Made by a program: the position numbers and the translations under genes. A stretch of DNA of 63,022 bases from Hydrolagus affinis (taxonomy: Eukaryota). The stretch lies in assembly GCA_012026655.1 (NCBI GenBank), contig JAAILG010001687.1:1-63022 (forward strand), written 5' to 3'. Position 1 is the first letter of the stretch; every line of letters begins with the position of its first letter. The notes beneath the pieces were generated by a model. It made no database searches and was not told where the DNA came from. It worked only from the letters and a program-made list of their open reading frames with translations. Shown here one piece after another: positions 27,501 through 30,500 of this stretch.

Positions 27501-30500
27501 TAAATCAAGTGAGAAATGGAAACTGGGAGCTGAGAGAGCAGTAAATGGTAATCCCTACAAAGGTATTGTTGTTAGACGAGTTAATGAAAAGATTACCCAA
27601 GCTAAAATGTTATGCAAAACACAACTATTTAAAGAGACTCTCAATCGTGAGCATGGAAAGATTTTAATACTTTGAGAGTGCAATCATGCCAGCTGCACAC
27701 AGAACATGAACCAATCCAAACAAAAACTGCAACTGAAGTCAATGTCTACCTGAAAATGGAATGTTGCCGTGCAGAAATAAGGATCCAACTAGGAGAAACG
27801 AGAACACACAGGTAAGGTCAGGAAAGTGGAAGGGATCGCACACCAAATACACTTCACTCAAAAGGGGAACAACAAGTTGTGGTTGTACTATTTGCACTGT
27901 AGCAAGCGGCAATGGCTGCTGGTAATGCTGCTGAGACCCAAGTTCATGGACTTGCTGGGGCATCCCAGAACATGGGACATGTACCATTGGATTGGGCTGT
28001 CTAGAGAAAACAAGCAACATTTATTCATTTCACTCTATGGTACTTTATCGCCTTAAATAGTAAAAATATGTTGGAAATATGCTGGGCTCTCCGAGGCTAG
28101 GTTAGATGCATTGACATATTTAACCCTGAATACCAAATGAGAAATCCCAGCCCGGAACAGGAGGAACATCCTGTAAAAGTTGAGCAGCAGTGTCCTGTAA
28201 AAATTAAGATTACAGCACTAATACTGCCTCATCCACTAAATATTCCAATGTAACCAAGCCTTAAATTTGGCAACAAAACAGTCAAACTATTGATTTGGGC
28301 CTAAAAGGCGAGGTTTTGTCAATTGACGCACTATTATCACCATCCATGACAATCAAACCTTTCTACACAAATAGCCACCCATTCTGGAATTCAAACGGAT
28401 AAAAATCCTCTACAATCCCACTAAGATCTTGGACCGTTGGGAGCATTTCAAATACAGCACCATCCTTGCTCATGAAGTATCGTGCTGAACAAATCATGGT
28501 TTAAAAACAAATTACATAAAGCATTGTTATTAAGTTTATAAGTTAATAATATTATTATAAGTTACGTTGCAAATCAATAGACCTGAAGAAAAATGAAGAG
28601 TAGTTCTCATTTCCAATGCCCTGAAATTATCTAACAGATTAATATTTAAGATTAAGATACTGGAGAAAATAATGCAGCTGTTAACTTTCTTGAAGGATTT
28701 ACCTGCATTAAAACAAGTAAATAAAGTACTGTGAAAAGCTGAAAACTATCACAACGTACAAAACATTTGAAGGAAGTATTCTTTAGAACAGAAACACATT
28801 TGACAGAATACATTTAACATAAGGTTACAAAATTGGAAGAGTTTCAGTTTCATGCAGTGAAAGGATTTCATGCAGCTTAAAATTAATAATTGCCTTTATT
28901 AAGACCATTTGAGACAATTTCCTTTTCAGTTGGTTCCCAATAACCAGTGAACATTTGTGCAAAACAAATCTATGGTGTATTCACAGTTAACTAAAATGGT
29001 CTCCTTTATTGCAGAAGTTGATGGGATGAAGCAAGGAACATTTGACATGCTACAGCTAGAGCTTAAACAAATGGAACAGTCCGAGGGACAACAGCAGGAT
29101 CTGCAAAGTGAACAGTGATGGTTATTCCCAAGTGTTCTGAGGAATTCAGAACAAGGAAAAGTTTTACAGTAAGAAAGTGGCATCTCTCAACTGGGAGAAT
29201 AATTTTTAAAAATCTTGTTCTCTCATGCAGGCACTAAGTCACTACTGGAGGGTTTTTTTTCTGGAGGGAGAGCTTGGAAGACTTGTTCAAACCTACCACA
29301 TCACTGGAGATTTCAGCCGGTGGACCATCCAAGCTGTTGTGTGAGGTTGGAATCAATTGCTCACCGTTTTCTCTTAGTGATGGGTTCCTGGGTTCTTTCC
29401 TATTATTCCCTTCATTAAATAATTGTGGAACCCCACAAACTAGCATCTCTCCTTGAGGGCAAGTGGACCGGTGCTGTCTGCGTTCTATCTTTGCATTTTT
29501 CAGTAGGGTGCAACTGGTCTTCTGGTTTATTATCTGATGCAGAGACTTGTGCAACGAAGAGAGGTCTGAAAGGTCTCCGTAGGAATGAGCAGTTGGTGGG
29601 ACAGAGCGAGAAGCTAACCTTTTGGCAGACGGGTTAGAGATAAAACGAGGAATAAAAGTATGACAGCAACATAAAGGTGGTGTGGAATCGGTTGCCTGAA
29701 GTGGAGGAGGAAATAGCTGATTGGGAGTTGATTTATGGTAAAGGGTGCTGCGTGTTAAATAACCTAGTTTACTGAGGTTAGCTTCATCCAATCCATAAGA
29801 AAAACTCTTGCTTTGCTGCCCTCGTACAAAGCTCATGCACTTCTTGTCTTTCACAGTGTCCTGAGCGATTATAGATTCACTGTGACGCCGATTTTCGGAG
29901 TTTAATATTGTGAACTTATTCACAAGCGAAGCCTCAAAACTGCTGAGAGGACAAAAATAACCAGGGCAGCACTTTTCACTTGGCGTCTGTGGACATTCAC
30001 TGGAGGATCTCTGCCATAAATGTGGACTTGATTTATTTGTTCCTTCCTGCCCAATCGAATCATGCACTGAACACAAAGAACTTTGGTTCAAACTTCTAAA
30101 TAATGGGTGCGGACTCTGATACTTCGGAGCTTCGATTAAAGAAGTACTTCCTCGTCTTTGGGTCAAGAAAGCCTGAAGTACAGAGTTAATACACGGTGAA
30201 AAAGAAACCAGTCTCTCAGCTGCCTGAAGATGGGGAACGTTTAACAACAATATTCCCCCAACAATTGAAGCAGAACACTATTTAGCTACATCGGTATTAA
30301 AGAAAGATAAACAATTTAAGATGCAAATTATCCTTCATAACTTGCTCTGTACACATGTGTAACTAGAACCACCACCAACTTAATGATTGACATTCAAGTA
30401 AATCAAACACTAATTAAATTCAGGCGAGCTAAGGGGATATGATCAAAATAGTGGACTGACCATCTTAGAAGCAAGTCCTCAACCACAATTTAGAGAAAAT

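Follow-up and report, generated by a model that had tools for sequence, protein, structure and literature searches.

The WNK2 locus

We analysed a stretch of 63,022 nucleotides from Hydrolagus affinis (contig JAAILG010001687.1, positions 1 to 63,022; hereafter the window). The minus strand of this stretch carries a kinase gene of the WNK family, which is WNK2 judging by the names that NCBI gives to the corresponding fish proteins. Within the gene lies a large cassette-type coding exon (29297..30223, minus strand; 927 nt, 309 codons, phase 0-0), and this exon, referred to as the cassette, is the subject of the present study. WNK2 is the least studied WNK kinase and is expressed in the brain. 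The paralogous gene WNK1 contains a nervous-system-enriched exon, HSN2, in which truncating mutations cause type 2A hereditary sensory and autonomic neuropathy (HSAN2A). The original prediction, made from the window alone, held that the cassette is the WNK2 equivalent of HSN2.

A tblastn search with WNK2 isoform X3 of the spotted gar (P0004) returned 21 ordered segments on the minus strand, from 62241 down to 3236. The segments span exon 1 to the last exon and include the non-catalytic C-terminal half, and the kinase exons are 81-100 % identical to gar WNK2. The WNK signature consists of a lysine in the glycine-loop strand and a cysteine that replaces the usual subdomain-II lysine. Both are found in the translation of exon 1, the lysine in GSFKTV and the cysteine in VAWCEL. 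Exon 3 matches the Pfam family Pkinase (E 2.8e-15). The prediction of a WNK2-type gene is supported by this collinearity with a gar protein that NCBI names WNK2.

Two parts of the C-terminal half have features of their own. A 33-residue exon at 8819-8917 (minus strand) is 100 % identical to residues 2296-2328 of gar WNK2 (E 1.6e-14) and looks extremely constrained; the remaining C-terminal half is 33-67 % identical. The last exon (3236-3565, minus strand) encodes a protein end close to the ..PVPLQNPILSPPSPNMRTT of gar WNK2 X3 and bowfin X1. The C-terminus of bowfin X2 differs, indicating that the tail of the protein is isoform-specific.

Structure of the cassette

Translation of 29297-30223 on the minus strand meets no stop over 309 codons. 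The splice sites were read directly from the sequence. The 3' splice site (30224..30250, minus strand) has a pyrimidine tract, ttccccatcttc, followed by ag, and the acceptor reads ttccccatcttcag directly before the first codon, GCA. The last codon, GTG, is followed by the 5' splice site gtaggt (29291..29296, minus strand). Translation and splice sites thus match the predicted open phase 0-0 segment with an acceptor and a donor between exons 8 and 9. The cassette is rich in serine (15.2 %) and cysteine (4.2 %), also as predicted.

The open frame is bounded closely on both sides. An in-frame stop lies nine codons upstream of the cassette start, and if the donor gtaggt were left unused, a stop would follow 20 codons beyond the cassette. 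The enclosing open reading frame (ORF), counted from ATG, GTG or TTG to the stop, encodes 338 amino acids (29234..30250). The stop-free stretch around the cassette comprises 347 codons (29237..30277) and ranks second by length in the window. The window was shuffled 200 times at the mononucleotide level; the longest open stretches then had a mean length of 141 codons and a maximum of 209, and none of the 200 shuffles reached 309 codons.

The flanking exons are constitutive. The eighth coding exon, exon 8 (33140..33339, minus strand), is supported by tblastn, translation and a few RNA reads. Its 3' end at 33140 reads ..CCACCCACA before gtaaga, in phase 0, and its peptide ends in ..YQQPPT. Exon 9 (27853..27996, minus strand) has a firm start at 27996 and an approximate 3' end. 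Its sole in-frame acceptor is acag before CCCAAT at 27996, which opens the peptide PNPMVH... The predicted location in intron 8 agrees with exon counting, by which the cassette follows the eighth coding exon. Since 927 is 3 x 309 and both junctions are in phase 0, the reading frame is kept whether the cassette is included or skipped.

The acceptor region of exon 9 holds two AGs 4 nt apart (27996-28003, minus strand), one in tag and the other in acag, and use of the upstream tag leads to a stop. The genomic DNA of a relative, described below, differs at position 28002, which adjoins this upstream AG.

Homologous exons in gars, bowfins and sturgeons

That the cassette is a genuine WNK2 coding exon, and a conserved one, is very probable, and much of the evidence comes from ray-finned fishes. 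A phmmer search with the cassette against 1.84 billion representative proteins gave two matches, one of them believable: P0002, a 317-residue sturgeon ORF (E 1.8e-5). The other, P0001, is a 2393-residue tandem-repeat protein matched in 15 stretches, and it was rejected as an artefact of composition and repeats. In BLASTP, the cassette and P0002 are 28 % identical over 296 columns (E 9e-12). P0002 shares a 90 % cluster with P0003, a WNK protein of 1967 residues from Acipenser sinensis, in which the cassette segment stands between the same flanking peptides. A search with the cassette of P0003 returned five clusters at E <= 0.01 from 4320 candidates (E 1e-75 to 3e-44). All five are named WNK2, and they come from Lepisosteus oculatus, Atractosteus spatula, Amia ocellicauda (X1 and X2) and Amia calva.

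Direct comparison of the exons supports their homology. The cassette segment aligns by tblastn with residues 691-968 of the gar protein P0004 (30163-29333 in the window; 30 % identity, E 7.7e-12). Local alignment of the cassette with three fish segments gave scores of 174-199 against 40-42 +/- 6-8 for shuffled sequences (z 17.5-23.3), and none of the 500 shuffles per partner reached the observed score. The junctions agree as well. Exon 8 matches the gar, bowfin and sturgeon sequence ..SDGTFDSGLGSTVYSDS..QQPPA that stands directly before their cassettes, and the upstream peptide ending in ..YQQPPT in the window corresponds to ..YQQPPA and ..YPQPPA in the ray-finned models. Downstream, the window reads PNPMVH..QQHYQQP where gar, after its cassette, reads PGLSVAQ..QSYQQP. 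Exon 9 itself has no tblastn segment at E <= 1 against gar WNK2, and the cassette is therefore better conserved than the exon that follows it.

The ray-finned cassettes occupy the same junctions of the same gene (XP_069045566-573 of Lepisosteus oculatus, XP_066553861/2 of Amia ocellicauda and MGH0148868.1 of Acipenser sinensis), and the WNK2 models of Atractosteus spatula and Amia calva likewise place it between exons 8 and 9. They encode 311-330 residues, compared with 309 in the window, with the same three conserved blocks and with the same serine (~15-17 %) and cysteine (~4-5 %) content. Identity of the window cassette to them is only 26-33 %. A further difference lies at the N-terminal end, where the ray-finned cassettes have an extension of 21-22 residues (xNSSxPxIIxEPxLSD; columns 1-21 of the four-way alignment A1 of window, gar, bowfin and sturgeon) that the window exon does not contain. 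A tblastn search of 30224-33139 for an upstream mini-exon encoding this extension gave only chance-level matches (best E 0.08).

The presence of the orthologous exon in WNK2 of gar, alligator gar, bowfin and Chinese sturgeon places it in the ancestor shared with ray-finned fishes. The exon is ancient, as had been predicted: its identity to the ray-finned versions is 26-33 %, compared with 81-100 % in the kinase exons. It had been left open whether automated annotations include the exon; RefSeq models of gar and bowfin and GenBank models of sturgeon and gar already do.

Exon 8 varies in its junction with the cassette among gene models. All eight gar RefSeq isoforms (P0004 and P0009-P0015) have a shorter exon 8 directly before the cassette (..SAGQQ before KNSS..). 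The longer exon 8 is kept in the alligator gar and bowfin models (P0005, P0006 and P0007; ..QQPPA before HNSS..), which suggests an internal exon 8 donor in gar.

Other searches with the cassette had no useful result. A word-indexed search of 5.8 billion clusters gave 589 candidates, none at E <= 0.01. A profile of the four cassettes, searched up to E <= 10, recovered only P0002 among 5482 candidates. Word-indexed searches require shared 5-mers and a length window. The representative library, with a single entry for each 50 % cluster, did not return even the cassettes of gar and bowfin, and the blanks of all these searches are weak evidence. Of 107 pattern matches in metagenome contigs, none was confirmed, and a search of the PDB with the cassette profile gave no matches. 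The ESM Atlas yielded no lead (best score 0.75, recognition 1119). The sole Pfam match, to FANCF at E 0.017, falls below the FANCF cut-off and was rejected.

Conserved blocks and their possible role

The four-way alignment has 47 invariant columns, and these are concentrated in three short blocks. Block 1, QRRGSTSL (codons 22-29; 30137..30160, minus strand), contains an RRxS site of the basophilic type and continues as IEAPK..HP to codon 40 (30104). Its residues G25-I30, A32, K34, H39 and P40 are invariant in all four sequences. The arginine pair is found in three of the four; gar and bowfin read RRGS and sturgeon reads SCGS. Block 2, RRHSES (codons 112-117; 29873..29890, minus strand), holds a second RRxS site in which R113, H114, S115 and S117 are invariant, and RRHS is present in the window, gar, bowfin and the sturgeon ORF P0002. 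Block 3 (codons 217-237; 29513..29575, minus strand) has 13 invariant columns between D217 and S237, in the pattern D-x-SDLS-x-LH-x-SLH-x-II-x-x-K-x-S. It coincides with the sole predicted helix.

The original prediction had proposed a conserved core made of ERxVSF and RRxSTS. Of the two, the RRxSTS block is the best conserved part of the cassette in WNK2. ERxVSF is weakly conserved: VSF recurs only in sturgeon and is replaced by ASC and ASY in gar and bowfin.

AlphaFold2, run with the four-sequence alignment, gave a mean predicted local distance difference test score (pLDDT) of 42. The only helix covers residues 219-236, in a block with pLDDT ~60, and the insert is predicted to be disordered apart from this short helix. 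Proline makes up 8.4 % of the cassette, and the two RRxS sites are RRGS at residue 23 and RRHS at residue 112. No RFxV or RxFxV motif, which binds SPAK and OSR1, occurs in the 309 residues.

The cassette adds ~309 residues between the peptides of exons 8 and 9, downstream of the kinase exons and of the CCT-like autoinhibitory exons. Here it could serve as a regulated, disordered module of linear motifs that is optionally included. RRxS sites are known to regulate WNK kinases, and the two sites in the cassette may be acceptors for basophilic kinases of the PKA, PKC or SGK type. The helix of block 3 may serve to dock a partner. Inclusion of the exon would then alter the regulation, partners or location of WNK2 and leave catalysis untouched, and the effect would parallel the supposed action of HSN2 on WNK1. 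We regard the chances that such a motif module operates in WNK2 as about even, given the sequence.

Constraint, expression and opposing evidence

A genomic DNA contig of a relative that differs by ~1.9 % (62 of 3343 bases) allows the cassette to be compared with its surroundings. The relative has no indels in the cassette, compared with five in the covered flanking introns (28049, 28509, 28759, 28848 and 30305). Up to position 30038, the 15 substitutions in the cassette comprise seven synonymous and eight non-synonymous changes and no stop (dN/dS, the ratio of non-synonymous to synonymous rates, ~0.33). None falls in an invariant column, and the single change in codon 117 of block 2 is synonymous.

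Several results weigh against the reading of the cassette as a functional exon of WNK2. The paralogue label leans on NCBI naming, and comparison of two exons with PDB chains fails to separate WNK1, WNK2 and WNK3. The CCT-like exon scores 99.3 bits over 75 residues with WNK3, 92.0 bits over 63 with WNK2 and 77.6 bits over 61 with WNK1, and its identity by hand count over 61 shared residues is 74 %, 75 % and 72 %, respectively. Kinase exon 2 scores 112.3 bits with WNK1 and 110.6 bits with WNK3 in a listing that contains no WNK2 kinase chain. The substitutions of the relative were scored for 742 nt up to 30038, a part of the cassette that begins after codon 61. The excess of synonymous changes is only weak (binomial P 0.03, or 0.13 if 30 % synonymous changes are expected), and the substitution rate of the cassette, 2.0 % (15/742 nt), equals that of the neighbouring intron, 1.9 % (25/1300 nt). 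Searches of clusters and representatives with the exon, with the sturgeon segment and with the profile returned no WNK2 model that includes the cassette from chondrichthyans, teleosts or tetrapods. Among sequencing runs on record, the exon occurs in one, of genomic DNA, and in no RNA run. Three single-cell polyA RNA runs, from a differently coded organism with 90 % likeness, placed no read on the cassette and gave no junction. Finally, the phosphorylation and docking roles are inferred from the motifs alone.

The missing RNA support and the intron-like substitution rate would fit a relic, or a fortuitous open frame within the intron, that this species has ceased to splice. Such an origin is highly improbable. 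Chance did not produce a frame of this length in the shuffled windows, and both the 309-codon frame and its splice signals are intact. The motif blocks have been kept across a very deep split, and the compared part of the relative has neither an indel nor a stop and shows the synonymous excess. A conserved coding exon accounts better for these features.

The same RNA runs bear on how the exon is used. Fully fitting reads number 2, 12 and 4 per run, and depth reaches 7.6 in the bins of exon 8 and ~1 in those of exon 9. The gap over the cassette could hint at skipping and could equally reflect cross-species mapping, and it is no evidence either way. A constitutive rather than optional cassette in the WNK2 genes of these lineages is unlikely, though worth weighing. 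All models include it, namely the eight gar and two bowfin isoforms examined and those of sturgeon and alligator gar, and the RNA gap could also arise from faster divergence of the cassette, the reads being from another organism. However, isoforms that lack the ~330 residues may sit in other clusters, phase 0-0 permits skipping, and ~18 fully fitting reads fell in the bins of exons 8 and 9 with none on the 927 nt between them. Inclusion is presumably alternative and probably neural.

Intron 8 also contains two very high-copy repeats, at about 30979-31352 and 32662-32848. Their summed contig depth in the DNA run is 6e4 to 1.8e5, compared with ~50 elsewhere. Reads from the three RNA runs heap almost entirely on these two repeats, with loose ends and a partial fit.

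Relation to the HSN2 exon of WNK1

HSN2 is described as lying between exons 8 and 9 of WNK1, has no reported motif, and is 38 % identical between chimpanzee and zebrafish (PMC3536653). A domain that it encodes is reportedly bound by KIF1A (PMC3933052). A 2025 review numbers its site as intron 9 of NM_018979.4 (PMC12650649). The cassette resembles HSN2 in several respects. Both are large, in-frame, optional exons after exon 8 by exon count, and the cassette, too, is an insert that AlphaFold2 predicts to be disordered, with short motifs. HSN2 reportedly adds a KIF1A-binding region, and its available description reports no motif. The position of the cassette, in frame and in the intron that follows exon 8 by exon count, is therefore of the HSN2 type, subject to the numbering difference in PMC12650649. 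In sequence, the searches made here demonstrated no similarity between the two.

A looser parallel is offered by exons 18a and 18b of WNK3, where isoforms that contain 18b were detected only in brain (PMC3581481). They too are optional coding exons of a WNK paralogue, and the WNK3 exon is tissue-restricted. They differ from the cassette in belonging to another gene and in lying far downstream.

We slightly favour the view that the cassette is an ohnologue of HSN2, in which case the insert would predate the duplication of WNK1 and WNK2 and the block common to both would be its functional core. Besides the shared position after the eighth coding exon (PMC3536653), both inserts are motif-poor or disordered, HSN2 as described in the available text of that paper and the cassette by prediction. 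In addition, the block that the original prediction matched to HSN2 (RRxSTS..EA, followed by P.[FL]R) is the best conserved one among the WNK2 cassettes; it coincides with the second and third of the quoted HSN2 fragments, which are unconfirmed, and this points to their importance. A rough BLOSUM62 estimate by hand gives ~33 bits for the match to the quoted fragments, about the score that an E of 0.001 demands against 1.84 billion sequences. For this reason, the blank phmmer result neither supports nor excludes kinship with HSN2.

Against an ohnologous origin stand the phmmer search itself, which uses no word index, covers all lengths and found no WNK1 match at E <= 0.001, and the profile search at E <= 10, which gave only the sturgeon ORF; the word-indexed searches likewise had no match in WNK1. 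Gar and bowfin do not keep the ERxVSF block. The position argument is weakened by the differing numbering of the HSN2 site, intron 8 in the available text of PMC3536653 and intron 9 in that of PMC12650649, and the quoted HSN2 fragments are unconfirmed. Common descent of the cassette and HSN2, which is argued only from position and from these unconfirmed fragments, appears marginally the better bet.

The alternative is that WNK2 gained the exon itself and that the likeness to HSN2 is convergence of a basophilic, serine-rich motif in disordered sequence. RRxS-type motifs are short and common, and every sequence search links the cassette to WNK2 alone. Independent gain would have to explain why two ohnologous genes each have a large, in-frame and disordered exon at the same relative position. 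It would also require that three collinear matches to the quoted fragments arose by chance, which is unlikely if the fragments, as yet unconfirmed, are accurate. We consider it a credible but less probable origin.

If the cassette and HSN2 are ohnologues, the single vertebrate WNK gene would have carried a disordered HSN2-type insert in its intron 8 before the duplication. The insert would have been kept in WNK2 of cartilaginous fishes, sturgeons and holosteans and would be lost or unannotated in teleosts and tetrapods. The HSN2 core would then consist of GSTS[LF].EA with RR upstream of it, and perhaps of the LH.SLH.II helix. This full scenario could as readily prove wrong as right.

Other repeats in the window

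Besides the repeats of intron 8, the gene contains remnants of mobile elements. Broken retroelement ORFs lie at 46838-48291 on the minus strand, in the orientation of the gene, within the intron that separates the exons 48565-48744 and 45145-45369. Two pieces match the Pfam family RVT_1 (E 1.3e-9 and 1.4e-8), as would fit a decayed reverse transcriptase of the long interspersed element (LINE) type. Two plus-strand ORFs, at 12-347 and 22380-22769, have a similar tail (..IIIP.KK..II.L..) and look like copies of the same interspersed repeat in introns or flank.

Implications

An HSN2-like exon in WNK2 is not mentioned in the available portions of PMC3191056, PMC13686953, PMC12413468, PMC9508073, PMC10593226, PMC3242505, PMC3581481, PMC3933052, PMC3536653 and PMC12650649. 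More generally, we found no paper that describes the WNK2 cassette in the available text of the literature on WNK2 and HSN2, a scope that leaves out figures and supplements. The window exon is a member, from a distant lineage, of an exon known from gene models and apparently undescribed in the literature. The connection with HSN2 would plausibly be the new idea. For annotation, the exon is found in the models of gar, bowfin and sturgeon, and the searches run here returned no further WNK2 model that includes it.

To our knowledge, no WNK exon other than HSN2 has been linked to a neuropathy in humans. If a paralogous copy of it has indeed been kept in WNK2 across a very deep vertebrate split, the comparison would show which few residues matter, and the shared core would become a concrete target for understanding how loss of HSN2 causes sensory neuropathy. 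Even without the link to HSN2, the cassette is a conserved module of WNK2, and its two RRxS sites and its predicted helix are open to direct tests.

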